Positions 20,959 to 27,024 of a DNA stretch of 64,000 nucleotides are shown piece by piece. A program made the translations under genes and the position numbers. The stretch is from contig CP075492.1 of the NCBI GenBank assembly GCA_021613535.1, positions 12,524,001-12,588,000 on the forward strand. Reading direction: 5' to 3'. This DNA is from Adineta vaga (Eukaryota; Animalia; Rotifera). Each line of letters starts with the position of its first letter. The first letter of the stretch is position 1. Under the pieces are notes generated by a model, which was given only the letters and a program-made list of their open reading frames with translations, ran no database searches and was not told the origin of the DNA.

Positions 20959-23558
20959 ATGGCATTGCATAAATTATCGAAACCGAAAACATTTCATGTA
21001 GATTATTGTGGTTGTACAGCAGCAGCATTACTATTAAATGATCAAACAGTACGCGATGCAATTGATGTTATTCATCAAGTGAAAACAAAACGTGATTTTG
21101 TTAAAACAACAGTCACGATATCAAAAGATGGTGTGAAAATAATTTATAATAATGAACCAAAATTTTCGACGACTGTACCTGCAACGATGATTGCTGGGTC
21201 AACACTTGGTAAACCTTCTTTACATAATACTGTCGGTATGTTATTAAATTTCAAATAGAAAGGAAAAGAAAAACTTCTCTCTCTCTCTCTCTTTTTTTTG
21301 TCAATATTTTAATCAGGTGTTGTATATATTTCACCCTTGACTGGTCAGCATTATCCCGCATTTGTTCATGTTTATCGATGTGATTCATCACGTACTGCTC
21401 AAAAATTTCTTTTACGTCTACGTGCATATCTATATCCTGAAAGTCATCGTCTTCGAATTTGTCAACTAGAACAACAATTACTTGATCGAAATTTACTAAA
21501 TATTGATCGTTTTAATGCAGCCAAAGCACAAAAAAAATCATCAACACCAACGACAGTGACATCAAATGATAATCGAAAAGAAAATCAAGTCGATCCGATT
21601 AAATCAATAACGGAAGAATTTCAAAAGAAGATTGATTCACAAGAACCTATTCTTTTTCCACCGAAAGATTATGATACACTACATGCTAAACATGGCGACA
21701 TTCAACGAGCACAAGTATGGAAAAGTACTGAGGTAAAGAAAAAAATACATCTTTTTTTATCAGGTCACTATATATATATTGCCTAGATTTTCATTTCCAA
21801 GGTTATCCTCTATTTCCTTTCTTTTTGATCAATCAATAACACATCAATTGTACTGAGCGAAGTACGAAGTGAAAAAGAAAGAAAAAAGAAAACCTTGTTG
21901 ATATTCGTACATATGAAAAGAAAAAAAAAGAGTAAATTCAGTGAGCGATTAGACTTTCTCTCTCGTTTTCGCTCTACATATTGATGATTAAAAGTAACCG
22001 ACATTCTCGTTGTTGCCGCCTTTTTGTCATCATCTTCTGTTGGCTAAATATACATACAGACTTTCTCTTTGTCTCTCTCTCTCTCTGTCTCTCGCGCGCT
22101 TCGTCCCTTTCTCCTATTCGTGTATACTCCCACTTCAAATGTAACAACAATATTCAGGCACATTATTCATTGATTGAAAGATTAACATCTCTCCTACGTT
22201 ATTCTATTTGTTTGGAGAGTAGTAAATGACCGTTTTACCTTTTTTTTCTTTAAAAGCACTATTTACTTGATATGACATAATCAGTTAATATGGTACGTCT
22301 CAAACATGAATTTCAAACATCACCAAGTTTTACTACATTTTTCACTGCGAAATTACGATCTAGTTATGAGATGTGTTTTGGATCAAAGGTGATAATATTT
22401 CATTTAGAAGACCTTTTTTTATAATTATGATATATAATTCTAATATTATTCTGTTTTTAGCCGACCATTGTTGGTTATTCACCATTAGATTCAGGTGATA
22501 TTCCGACGCGTCGACAAATACAAACGGATTCTCTTTCAAAAATCGATGAACATAAAAACAATGATATCCTTGAACATAGCAGATCAATTACTCCTCAAAA
22601 TGATCCCACCATTGATCCGGTAATAAACTCATTTACTAATGTTGGAAAGTAGCATAATCAACGCTATATTTGTTTTTCTTTCTCACAGGTAGAAACTGTT
22701 AGTTTAGCTTTTGATTTTCTCAAAGATGAAACGGGTTCAATTTTTACTGATACCGATGGTAATATTGAACACATAGATGTTCAACAACACAACAAACTAC
22801 CAGTTTATCGTTTTCGTCCACCGCAAATCACTGCCATTACGAAGTATGTATTGAAATATCTGAACATAGATCTAGCGATCAATTCGATTGTGATTTATCT
22901 TCTTCATAGAAAATTATTTACTAGAAATAATAATTATGAATTAACGAATAACGTTCCACAATCAAATTCATCTTCACGAAACAATTTAGACGTTCATTAT
23001 GAAAATAATAATAATCGTCACCATCATTATGTACAGAATGGACATAGAACTCCGCCAGAAGCACGTTTATATAGTGATGATCAACAACATCGTCAGCAAT
23101 TCCGTCCTCATTTTGAAAATCGTTTAATCAATGGTAGTGGCATTCCCATCGCTACGAATCCACTTTGGTCACCACCCTCATCTTCGTTGGTTAGTTCACA
23201 ACCAAATTTATTATCGCATCAAAAAACTGTCGATATCACTCCATTTCATCGTCAATTAAGTCCGGAAAGAAATAATGAAATATCTTCCACGCCATTAAAA
23301 AATCCTCTTTATGCAAGTGATCCTGATAATCGATCGGATTTACTTTCATTTCATCAGAAAAAATCAACACCAGTACAGCATCAATTAAATAGAAAACAAA
23401 AAACACAATCACAATATCTTGATACGAATGAATTTATTCTATGTGCATCGAACGGTCAACCATTAAGAAAGACTCAACATCCTAATAGATATGCTTCAAA
23501 AGAATATAGACCTCATTCAATGAATGTAAATGGTACTCTACTTGATGTGTATTATTAA
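20959..23558 (+). CDS. PTB/PID-domain adaptor-like protein, multi-exon
   Basis: FHVDYCGC, VTISKDGVKI and FVHVYRCDS...AQKF fit a PTB fold; then PILFPPKDYDT and a low-complexity tail ending LDVYY*. Confidence 0.7.
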
Positions 23559-24114
23559 TGTTTTTCCTCTAGCCAATTCATACACAGTTTTGTTTGAAAA
23601 GGAACAGTGAGGTGAACACCTATCTATGCGAGTATGTAGTATCTACTAAGTCTTTATTTTTTGACATATTATCTGTTTGTATTGACCATAATTAAAATGA
23701 TTACTAAACTTATATTTCATTTTTCCAATTGTATTTAATTGCTTTTCTGAATATCGACAAAAAGATTGATACCAATATCATTTATGACAATTTATCGTCT
23801 ATGTATATAGGTTTAATTCGTTTGCTTTATTTTTCTTTCGCTCAATTTACTATTCACAATTTAGCATAATTACAAATACAAATGTATGCTTTTCAAGTAT
23901 GAAAAAAAAATGGTAATATATCAAAAAGTGATTGACATATAATTCAAGTTCTATGTTAGTTGCAAACAGTCTAATTCGACAAATTAATTTCGTTAGTTGT
24001 TTCAAAACATTCATACTATTTATATCATTTCTCAATAGAACATCGGTACTGTTGTTGATAAAAAGAAAATCAAGTTAATCAAAATAATGCATGTACTTTC
24101 GAAACAATTCAAGC

Positions 24115-24641
24115 CACTGCTATTACCTACACTCGCTGATTCAATCTCTATAGCGAGGTAGGAAATACAGTGAAGTAAACTTTCGAATTATCAACAGAGA
24201 AAATACATAAACGATGATAATTTATCAATTCGACTACTGTCCAGGAATGCATCGCTCATTCATAAATCCGAGCGAGGTATAACTGAACAGTTGTCTAATA
24301 GATAGAAGAAAACTTGGAAATAAGTTCACGTACAAATGGCATTAGTAACTGTTTGCTGTACTTCGCTGTCTTTCATTTCGCATAGCGTGGCACAGCAGAA
24401 CAGTAGCTAATACACACGACTAGAAAATAAAAAAAGATTTGCTTTCTTATACGCATTATCACCGTCCCTGCATCTCCCTAGTCTTTTCATGTACCCAAGG
24501 GAGGCACATCGAACAGTGAAAGTGCGTGAAGAAATAAAAACTAACCGATGACAAACGATTTTCACACAGTTTTCACCGGCCAACAGACACGCCGTATTGC
24601 ATATCGAAGCGTTCCTGATTACCGGTGATCACGTTAGAAAA
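24115..24641 (+). ncRNA. Cluster of five related pre-miRNA-like hairpins (candidate miRNA polycistron)
   Basis: Stem-loops at 24115-24172, 24221-24306, 24341-24411, 24443-24534 and 24559-24641 with related 3' arms, ~110-119 nt period. Strand is tentative. Confidence 0.6.
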
Positions 24642-25192
24642 GGTTTTTTTTCTGCTCATCTTTGCACCTTACCATATCGACGAGAAAATAAAATCGTATG
24701 AATAAATAGATATACTATCACATCTTTTTATATCGATCGTTACAAACGGACGAACGAAACACATATTCTTAAAGAGAAAATATTGTGATGTCACTGGAGA
24801 GAGTGATGCGTCCGCAATGTAAACAAAGAATTCATCTGTATATCCCTGGATGATGGTGATATTGCTGCCGACGTAAAGAGACAAACATGCCTATATTCAC
24901 GAGTCATATCGTCAACTATCACTTTCGCATTGATTTATGGCGTCAGAAATCGTTCGACTAGTTATACTGTTGATTATTGACAAAATCAAATTCATATATT
25001 TTTTAAATATAAAAGACAAAGACCACAAAATTGTATCACAAACTTGAACACAGACAAAAGGACAAGAAAACATTTATAGTTAGTAACATATTATATAGAC
25101 GTTATTCACTTTGTAGCACGCTTGTATTTGTTATATAAACAAAAGGAAATGTACTCTTTGAAGCTAAGAACAAAAATAACAAAAGAAAAATT

Positions 25193-27024
25193 TTACATAT
25201 GTAATTCAGTTGTGTTTCTAGCTGATTCATCATCATTAGGTAAATATGATGGATTTTCTCCAGAAACTGTGATAACTATATGCCTTCGTTCGCCTTCTTC
25301 ATCAGTCGTTTCAATATCACTGATATCTTCGACGGTCGATCGTATAGGTGTTGTGATATTATCAATTATTTCAGTGTGTGAATCAATGAAACGATTACTA
25401 GCACGTTGTGTAGTTGTGAATGAATCATGAATGCTACCATATCGTCGAGAATTCGATGTTGGTTGATTAAATACAACTTCTGTTGTTGATCTTAGTGACG
25501 AAGATAGATTTTCGATACTTTCTGAGGTATCACTTGGTGCAAATAAAGCTCCACGAGCACCGCTATTCGGTGGATTGAATAGACGATTTACTAGAAGAGA
25601 ATAATATTTTGTTTTGAATGTGATAACTGTATTAAGAAAATAAAATTTACTAGACAACTGGCGATTATTTGATAGATCAATGTTCGAATCAGTAGTAGTT
25701 GAATGAATTAGAGGCGTTTGTTCTGTTGCTGATCTTTGTCGCGAACGATCACCATTATCTTCATCATCGGAATGATCAAGATTAGGAAAGACATATCGTT
25801 TACACACTGGGCATTGTCGTCGATTATTAATTAACCAAGGATCAATGCATTTCATATGATACGCTAGAATTAATCAAATCTCTAAGAAATATAATCTACA
25901 AAAAGAACGAAATAACAAACCATGATTGCAAGGTAAAATACGTAATTTTGCTCCTTCTTGAAAATCATCCAAACAAATAACACATACTTCCCATGGATCA
26001 CTTTTAACAAATTTTTTAAGAGTTAATTGTTTAAGTGCTGATCGTGGTAAACGATGACGACGTGTTCGACGTCGTTCTAAATGACATTTCACCAACTAAA
26101 TAAATGAGAAAAGAAAATCATCTAGTTTCGTAAACAATATTCTAGAAAACTAGAAACAACTCATACAATGAAACCGAGTAGACCGAAAAATGAAACAGCT
26201 ATCACAACGATAAATGGTATTATATATATTCCAAAGTTGAATGGTGGTTCCGGAATTATTTTTATATAATACCTGTTATATACTAAAGAATTAACAATAA
26301 TATGAAAAACTAATCTTACATTGGCGTAGCATTCACTGTTGTTTTATTATACAAAAAATGTGAAATTAACAACAAACCATCAGTTTGTGTAATCATTGTT
26401 GATGGTATATGAACAGCTAAATAGAAATAGAAGAATATTATATATAGTTTGATTTATCTTTACTTTTCGACGATGATCCCATTGAAAGTAAGTTATCCTC
26501 ATAGTTATATATAATAACTGCACTAAAATTCGCTAGTTGAGCATTTTGTACCTGAAAATAGGATAAGAAAAAAAGAAAATTTGTACAATTAACAATCAAA
26601 ATTTACTTTCACAGCAAATTCACAAGAATCTGCATCGTTTGTTCGAGCGATAAGTGCAATCCATTTATATCCTTTATCATGAATATCGTATGGTGGTGGT
26701 GATATTTTATGACAAGCATTTGCTGGATTTGTTGTTGTTATATAGCCCTTTTAAAATATATGCGCAATATATATTTATAAATATATATATAATTGTCGTA
26801 TTTATTCATACTTTCAATCCTCCGGTGGGCAATGTTGGACCGAAACTAGCAGTTTGATCATCGAAACTTTTAAGTAATTGATTCGTTATATTATACTAGG
26901 AAAAACGATCTGATTTTTATTTTAATTATAAGGTAATATCTTATCATACCACATTCACATCTGATAGAATCGTTTGAATAAAATAATAAAATAGAAATAT
27001 ATTGACTACATTGATGTTCATCAT
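25193..27024 (-). CDS. PA-TM-RING E3 ligase (RNF13/RNF167/Godzilla-like)
   Basis: Signal peptide; ASFGP, NPANAC, CEFAVKVQNAQ (PA domain); TM helix; RRHRLP; RING-H2 CVICLDDF...LRILPCNH...CIDPWL...CPVCK. Confidence 0.92.

Follow-up and report, generated by a model that had tools for sequence, protein, structure and literature searches.

A deeply conserved cluster of microRNA-like hairpins, probably transcribed from the minus strand, in the bdelloid rotifer Adineta vaga

Introduction

The cluster mir-35-41 of Caenorhabditis elegans is a polycistronic animal microRNA cluster made by local duplication. It comprises several paralogous hairpins of ~60-70 nt, spaced ~100-130 nt apart in a short intergenic transcript, whose guide arms are conserved and whose loops and spacers are free to vary. 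The guides of the mir-35 family are located on the 3p arm, have the seed CACCGGG, and begin with UCACCGGG. The locus that we describe here in the bdelloid rotifer Adineta vaga resembles mir-35-41 in all of these aspects of architecture and conservation, but it differs in that the guides of mir-35-41 are 3p whereas the conserved arms of the A. vaga hairpins are more probably 5p, and in that only one of its five units begins with UCACCGG.

The microRNA complement of A. vaga has been curated from two public small-RNA libraries, and MirGeneDB 3.0 holds 129 genes of this species (PMC11701709, PMC12256650). Their pre-miRNAs average 63 nt (PMC12256650), a size similar to that of the five hairpins presented below. 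According to our sum of the family-count table, about 100 of the 129 genes belong to conserved or rotifer-wide families and about 29 fall outside them (PMC12256650 supplement).

We analysed a window of 64,000 nt from the A. vaga genome (contig 3: 12524001-12588000), to which all positions below refer unless a contig is named. Five hairpins lying between two genes of this window almost certainly represent a real and deeply conserved microRNA cluster with its own promoter.

Results

Five paralogous hairpins between two genes

An earlier note, made from the letters of the window, had described five stem-loops with loops of 12-18 nt, and all of its measurements were confirmed in the sequence. Within the span 24110-24640, the 3' arms of the stem-loops, read on the plus strand, start exactly at 24151, 24270, 24383, 24497, and 24607, giving spacings of 119, 113, 114, and 110 nt (Table 1). 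RNA folding produced a single imperfect hairpin in each of the five 81-nt units, with a loop in the size range just given, 21-29 pairs, and a stem of ~22 upper and ~8-11 lower rungs. The loop motifs reported previously are also present, TTCA in units 1-4 and TGCAT in unit 5. In the comparison with dinucleotide shuffles that the same note had proposed, run with 200 shuffles per 81-nt unit on both strands, every unit folded better than its shuffles (z from -2.8 to -5.6, Table 1), and only 0 or 1 of the 200 folded as well as the real unit. The five units can be aligned with one another as paralogues; Tandem Repeats Finder reported no array at the locus, because the units are too diverged.

Table 1. 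Positions in the window of the five hairpins, their arms, and the promoter-like elements. Units are listed in the order of the proposed transcript; z-scores refer to dinucleotide shuffles on the plus (+) and minus (-) strand.
Feature	Position	Strand	Remarks
Conserved promoter-proximal blocks	24733-24900		Ten clusters; on the plus strand, e.g., GACGGACG, ATGATGTCAT, GAGAGTGATGCGTC, GAAAACAAAGAATA
Putative TATA box	24723-24732	-	TATAAAAAGA; ~100 nt upstream of unit 5
5'-splice-site-like motif	24667-24674	-	TGGTAAGG; downstream of the TATA box, before the first hairpin
Hairpin unit 5	24566-24638	-	First in the inferred primary transcript; z -2.8 (+), -3.1 (-)
Unit 5 frozen arm	24608-24629	-	Reads AUCACCGGU...; 1 variable column in ten clusters
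Unit 5 other arm	24573-24593	-	Highly conserved too
Hairpin unit 4	24452-24528	-	z -3.5 (+), -4.4 (-)
Unit 4 frozen arm	24498-24519	-	Reads UCACUGUUCG...; same sequence on contig 6
Unit 4 other arm	24460-24479	-	
Hairpin unit 3	24341-24412	-	z -4.3 (+), -4.8 (-)
Unit 3 frozen arm	24384-24405	-	Reads UACUGUUCUG...; invariant in 11 metagenome clusters
Unit 3 other arm	24348-24367	-	
Hairpin unit 2	24228-24300	-	z -5.6 (+), -4.4 (-)
Unit 2 frozen arm	24271-24293	-	Reads CAACUGUUCAG...; exact match to ACTGTTC-N-CCTCGC on the minus strand
Unit 2 other arm	24233-24256	-	
Hairpin unit 1	24110-24180	-	Last in the inferred transcript; z -5.1 (+), -4.7 (-)
Unit 1 frozen arm	24152-24173	-	22 nt; reads UCACUGUAUU...; invariant in 12/12 clusters that include unit 1
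Unit 1 other arm	24115-24137	-	

Flanking-gene exons were searched piece by piece. The minus-strand gene beside the cluster had been called RNF13, and its RING domain was confirmed (Pfam zf-RING). The name PTB given to the gene on the other side found no such backing, as its exon pieces (plus strand, 20959-23558) had no Pfam match at E ≤ 0.01; we retain 'PTB' below as a label. In RNA contigs of run X11, which carries the same species label, the upstream gene ends at ~23666, 450 nt before unit 1, and the mRNA of the RING gene ends at ~24979, so that the cluster lies outside both neighbouring mRNAs as assembled in this run. The stretch containing the cluster was absent from RNA runs of the same species label; older runs, in the form of 31-mer contigs, are of a kind that cannot show 22-nt reads. 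The RNA-type contigs of run X11 (23400-23666 and 24979-25330) are less than 90% identical to the window, which suggests that a divergent lineage is included under this species label.

In two other organisms, contigs extend over units 5-3 and stop ~33-44 nt beyond unit 5 (~24680-24692), close to the start site predicted below. At their other end both terminate at the site homologous to 24337, so that units 1-2 and the promoter, although equally conserved, are uncovered. These strandless contigs, from runs only guessed to be RNA, look like a transcript-derived assembly; their ends may correspond to transcript ends or to breaks in the assembly graph.

One arm of each hairpin is frozen across deeply diverged organisms

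BLAST with the 551-nt cluster as query (E ≤ 10) found, in the 100.8 Mb and six contigs of the genome, a single place besides the cluster itself, on contig 6 (C6:2491090-2491655, 72% identity) and flanked by the same two genes. The many dispersed copies that the earlier note had named as grounds for abandoning a microRNA reading in favour of a MITE or a satellite are therefore not there. In the pairwise comparison of the contig-3 and contig-6 copies, units 1, 2, and 4 have plus-strand 3' arms with 22-28 nt of complete identity (a 28-nt block in unit 2), and the loops and spacers are scrambled.

Using an exact 21-mer of the unit-4 arm, we recovered 11 metagenome contigs, all of which keep the hairpin order (11/11), two being cut by contig ends; conservation of the unit-4 arm among these clusters follows from the construction of the search, and the other four arms are free of that bias. 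The same two genes were located on either side of the metagenome clusters by tblastn, and every long contig has the gene called 'PTB' in synteny with the cluster. The flanking last exons share 28-65% protein identity and the RING exon 76-80% (tblastn), and because the flanking exons are so dissimilar the organisms must be deeply diverged. A maximum likelihood tree split the clusters into a contig-3 type (C3, L003, L005, L012, and L013) and a contig-6 type (C6, L004, L007, L011, L009, and L010) with 98/98 support, indicating that the duplication predates these species.

Conservation by region class was computed over nine non-redundant clusters. One arm of each hairpin, hereafter the frozen arm, is under purifying selection: only 3 of the 111 frozen-arm columns are variable (3%; pairwise identity 99.1%), as against 31% of the columns in the opposite arms, 71% in the loops, and 78% in the spacers. 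Such a gradient of constraint, from guide arm to partner arm to loop and flanks, is the signature of a microRNA and argues against a purely structural element. The two A. vaga copies of unit 3 each have a private change in this arm (contig 3, deletion of 1 nt; contig 6, T>C), and constraint on unit 3 may be relaxed in A. vaga.

A promoter-like region on one side of the cluster

Conservation outside the hairpins is one-sided: in ten clusters, strong conservation extends over the 260 nt on the RING-gene side of unit 5, whereas the 450 nt on the opposite side show no conservation in the aligned clusters. The conserved side contains a putative TATA box (TATAAAAAG/TATAAAAAGA), ten columns of which are invariant in 8 of the 10 aligned clusters (L003 reads TATAAATAGA, and L004 and L007 are one base short). 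On the plus strand the same stretch is TCTTTTTATA, which does not fit the TATA consensus in that reading.

A motif resembling a 5' splice site (TGGTAAG on the minus strand) lies ~40-45 nt before unit 5. Its plus-strand form, CTTACCA, is kept by 9 of the 10 aligned clusters and has disappeared from the contig-6 copy. No conserved splice acceptor matching this GTAAG motif was seen. Judging from its sequence, the motif could be a real donor, in which case the hairpins would sit in an intron, or a U1-binding element. In one metagenome lineage (L009 and L010), unit 5 and the GTAAG motif are gone through a deletion of ~110 nt, and the TATA region is retained directly upstream of unit 4.

A sister cluster on two further contigs

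The family pattern ACTGTTC-N(4-8)-CCTCGC was searched genome-wide alongside a reversed control, yielding 10 matches versus 0 for the control. Eight of the ten are hairpins, at four syntenic or ohnologous loci: three on contig 2, three on contig 5, unit 2 of the present cluster (minus strand), and unit 2 of the contig-6 copy (opposite strand). Units 3 and 4 match the pattern with one or two changes, and units 1 and 5 depart from the ACUGUUC seed of the sister hairpins. The two remaining matches are single sequences that form no hairpin (C2:2821970-2821987 and C3:11885472-11885491, loci L017 and L018; MFE -10.6 and -7.8); they have arisen by chance or are copies that have decayed. A covariance model built from unit 2 scored that unit strongly, gave a weak match to unit 3 and no significant one to the remaining units, and was rejected as a tool for a family census as too specific.

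The hairpins on contigs 2 and 5 form a sister cluster (contig 2: 1287539-1287827, and its counterpart on contig 5) located beside Prdx6. Like the five-hairpin cluster, it has a 5' arm of the form ACTGTTC-N-CCTCGC, a spacing of ~120-140 nt, a duplicate on the ohnologous contig, and a TATA ~100 nt and a GTAAG motif ~30-45 nt upstream of its first hairpin. Specifically, on contigs 2/5, TATATAAA lies 99/95 nt and CAGTAAGT 31/33 nt upstream of the first hairpin (the latter at ~1470-1477 in L014, and also in L020), both on the strand that has ACTGTTC...CCTCGC as its 5' arm. It is unlike the present cluster in having three hairpins rather than five, and in its central sequences, neighbouring genes, and promoter sequence. 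Taken together, these clusters constitute a bdelloid family whose four loci hold at least 16 hairpins, with five each on contigs 3 and 6 and, probably, three each on contigs 2 and 5. The pairing of duplicated loci between contigs 3 and 6 and between contigs 2 and 5 fits the degenerate tetraploidy of A. vaga.

Both clusters also have a GAGAGAGTGAT-type motif ~170-200 nt upstream of the first hairpin, at 24800-24812 (plus strand) in the window and at ~1311-1322 in L014, as well as in L020. Its orientation relative to inferred transcription is opposite between the two clusters. From its sequence, it is possibly a common transcription-factor site.

The frozen arms are more probably minus-strand 5p guides

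The earlier note had favoured transcription of the plus strand and 3p guides with AGCGAG-like seeds, and this part of its proposal did not hold up. The same cluster could in principle be expressed from the plus strand, downstream of the upstream plus-strand gene and possibly by read-through from it, the frozen arms then being 3p guides that would start AGCGAGG, AGCGUGG, AGGGAGG, or AGCGUUC. Several observations would suit such an arrangement. The fold z-scores are equally good on the plus strand; AG(C/G)G opens each of the five frozen blocks, in register, at the loop side; the would-be seed GCGAGGU is common to two units; and in the contig-3 copy an AATAAA follows unit 5 on the plus strand (24686-24691). 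Wobble pairs do not separate the strands either, with 15 G:U against 11 A:C position types (p = 0.56) in a register built without G:U pairs. A count of 30 versus 17 types was set aside, as its register was derived from the minus strand. Free energy and alifold energy are lower on the minus strand, but this was rejected as strand evidence: shuffles match the margin and the z-scores are equal, pointing to an effect of composition.

Nevertheless, several lines of evidence argue for the minus strand. First, on the plus strand the upstream side would be devoid of any conserved sequence, the conserved TATA region would lie downstream and read wrongly, and the RNA contigs of the upstream gene stop well short of unit 1; moreover, the AATAAA is not conserved in orthologues. 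Second, the TATA of the sister cluster lies upstream of the opposite reading, that is, on the strand where the family pattern is a 5' arm. Third, the T>C substitution in unit 3 of the contig-6 copy would fall inside the plus-strand seed, and occupies position 19 in the minus reading. Finally, under the thermodynamic asymmetry rule for guide selection, the strand whose 5' end lies at the weaker end of the duplex is preferred. In units 1, 2, and 4, the duplex is stabler at its loop-side end (CUCGCU/AGCGAG or CUCCCU/AGGGAG), the basal end being weaker by 2.0, 3.6, and 3.7 kcal/mol, respectively. The rule therefore favours the frozen arm of these units as guide only on condition that this arm is 5p, and a plus-strand guide would have its 5' end in the stabler, GC-rich end. 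Unit 3 shows hardly any asymmetry, and in unit 5 it is the basal end that is stabler.

The minus strand is also favoured by the first base, as four of the five frozen blocks (all but that of unit 2) start with U in this reading, and the contigs of the two other organisms that end close to the predicted start site are suggestive of the same. CNNC and basal UG at unit 4 and CNNC at unit 1, looked for by eye on the strands read, were not found in the expected place, an observation that carries no weight. On the one-sided promoter conservation, the layout of the sister cluster, the duplex ends, and the seed substitution, the frozen arms are most likely minus-strand 5p guides, reading (U)CACUGU.../NACUGUUC.... 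Given a microRNA cluster, we regard transcription of the minus strand as highly probable, and the plus-strand arrangement as unlikely.

Probable microRNA hairpins rather than other structures or repeats

Comparison with the rules for animal microRNA curation (Fromm et al., 2015, as summarised in PMC12256650) revealed the structural and conservation features of canonical microRNAs, that is, imperfect hairpins of pre-miRNA size, a ~22-nt duplex, a loop of at least 8 nt, and the corresponding conservation profile. The hairpins might instead be conserved without being substrates of Drosha and Dicer, as a structure of a non-coding RNA, as siRNA precursors, or as protein-binding DNA or RNA motifs of the neighbouring genes. 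Two results would be in line with this. One is that no Rfam microRNA family matches: Rfam 15 gave no match at gathering thresholds anywhere in the window, the best permissive hits (E of 1.9-8) scoring far below threshold, in agreement with the previous failure to recognise a conserved family.

The other concerns compensatory change, which the earlier note had read from arm centres that differ between copies and still pair. That reading stands for the comparison of paralogous units, each of which keeps 19-25 paired rungs around a differing centre, a comparison made outside strict homologous register and thus not formal covariation. It fails among the orthologues of unit 2, where 97.4% of cells are paired, versus 20-50% when the partners are slid, but where no double-sided compensatory change was found, because one of the arms is frozen. 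No structure emerged from RNAalifold when all 61 hairpins were aligned with MAFFT, because the 3' arms of the paralogues are out of register. However, a structural or protein-binding element would be expected to constrain both arms or the loop, whereas here constraint falls on one arm of ~22-24 nt only, and the stem length, loop size, and ~115-nt spacing match those of polycistronic pri-miRNAs. We consider non-microRNA hairpins quite improbable.

Finally, MITE-like or satellite repeats, whose terminal inverted repeats would fold into hairpins by chance, could be suggested by the tandem units with their inverted-repeat structure, but they are already contradicted, to the point of being negligible, by the occurrence of the cluster at only two syntenic places in 100.8 Mb with no Tandem Repeats Finder array, by pattern matches of which eight are hairpins, confined to four loci that are syntenic or ohnologous, and two are non-hairpin singles, and by the maintenance of unit order and flanking genes across deeply diverged organisms. 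The proposal of a tandemly duplicated, lineage-specific microRNA cluster is supported by a frozen arm of ~22 nt in each unit, free loops and spacers, a lack of dispersed copies, and a lack of any Rfam family.

Relationship to known microRNA families

These seeds are not known to us from any conserved bilaterian family. Membership in the MIR-36 (mir-35) family was considered and rejected: unit 5 alone begins with (A)UCACCGGU, its eighth base differs, and, CACCGGUG being palindromic, the sequence falls on the 5' arm whichever strand is read.

Discussion

We think it likely that the five hairpins belong to a polycistronic microRNA gene, whose minus-strand transcript would run through units 5 to 1 and whose frozen arms would act as 5p guides. 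According to this model, RNA polymerase II would start ~30-40 nt downstream of the TATA at 24732-24725, most likely on the minus strand, and transcribe the units in the order 5, 4, 3, 2, 1. Drosha and Dicer would then cut out five duplexes of ~22 nt, and the frozen 5p arm of each would be loaded into Argonaute as the guide. The predicted seeds of units 1-4 are CACUGUA/CACUGUU or ACUGUAU/ACUGUUC, hinging on a 1-nt choice of the 5' end, and that of unit 5 is CACCGGU. The guides would be expected to repress mRNAs with matching sites.

The five-hairpin cluster would be an ordinary kind of gene, and may already be listed in the curated database, since a family of this size, with 16 or more well-conserved hairpins, probably lies among the ~29 lineage-specific A. 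vaga genes of MirGeneDB. It is doubtful that we are dealing with an expanded bdelloid-specific family present in no database, with a conserved 5'-splice-site-like element placed between the start site and the first hairpin. If this were true, the element would suggest control that depends on the U1 snRNP or is coupled to splicing, and the shared GAGAGAGTGAT motif would suggest co-regulation of the loci.

In terms of annotation, the analysis adds ten hairpins, here and on contig 6, that are missed by ORF-based tracks, and probably six more on contigs 2 and 5. The frozen 22-nt arms can also be used as markers for bdelloid contigs in metagenomes. More generally, an ancient asexual tetraploid has preserved one lineage-specific family intact on its two ohnologous chromosome sets. 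Should the family prove to be uncurated, it would represent a sizeable bdelloid-specific seed family, with a bearing on counts of microRNA gain and loss in rotifers.
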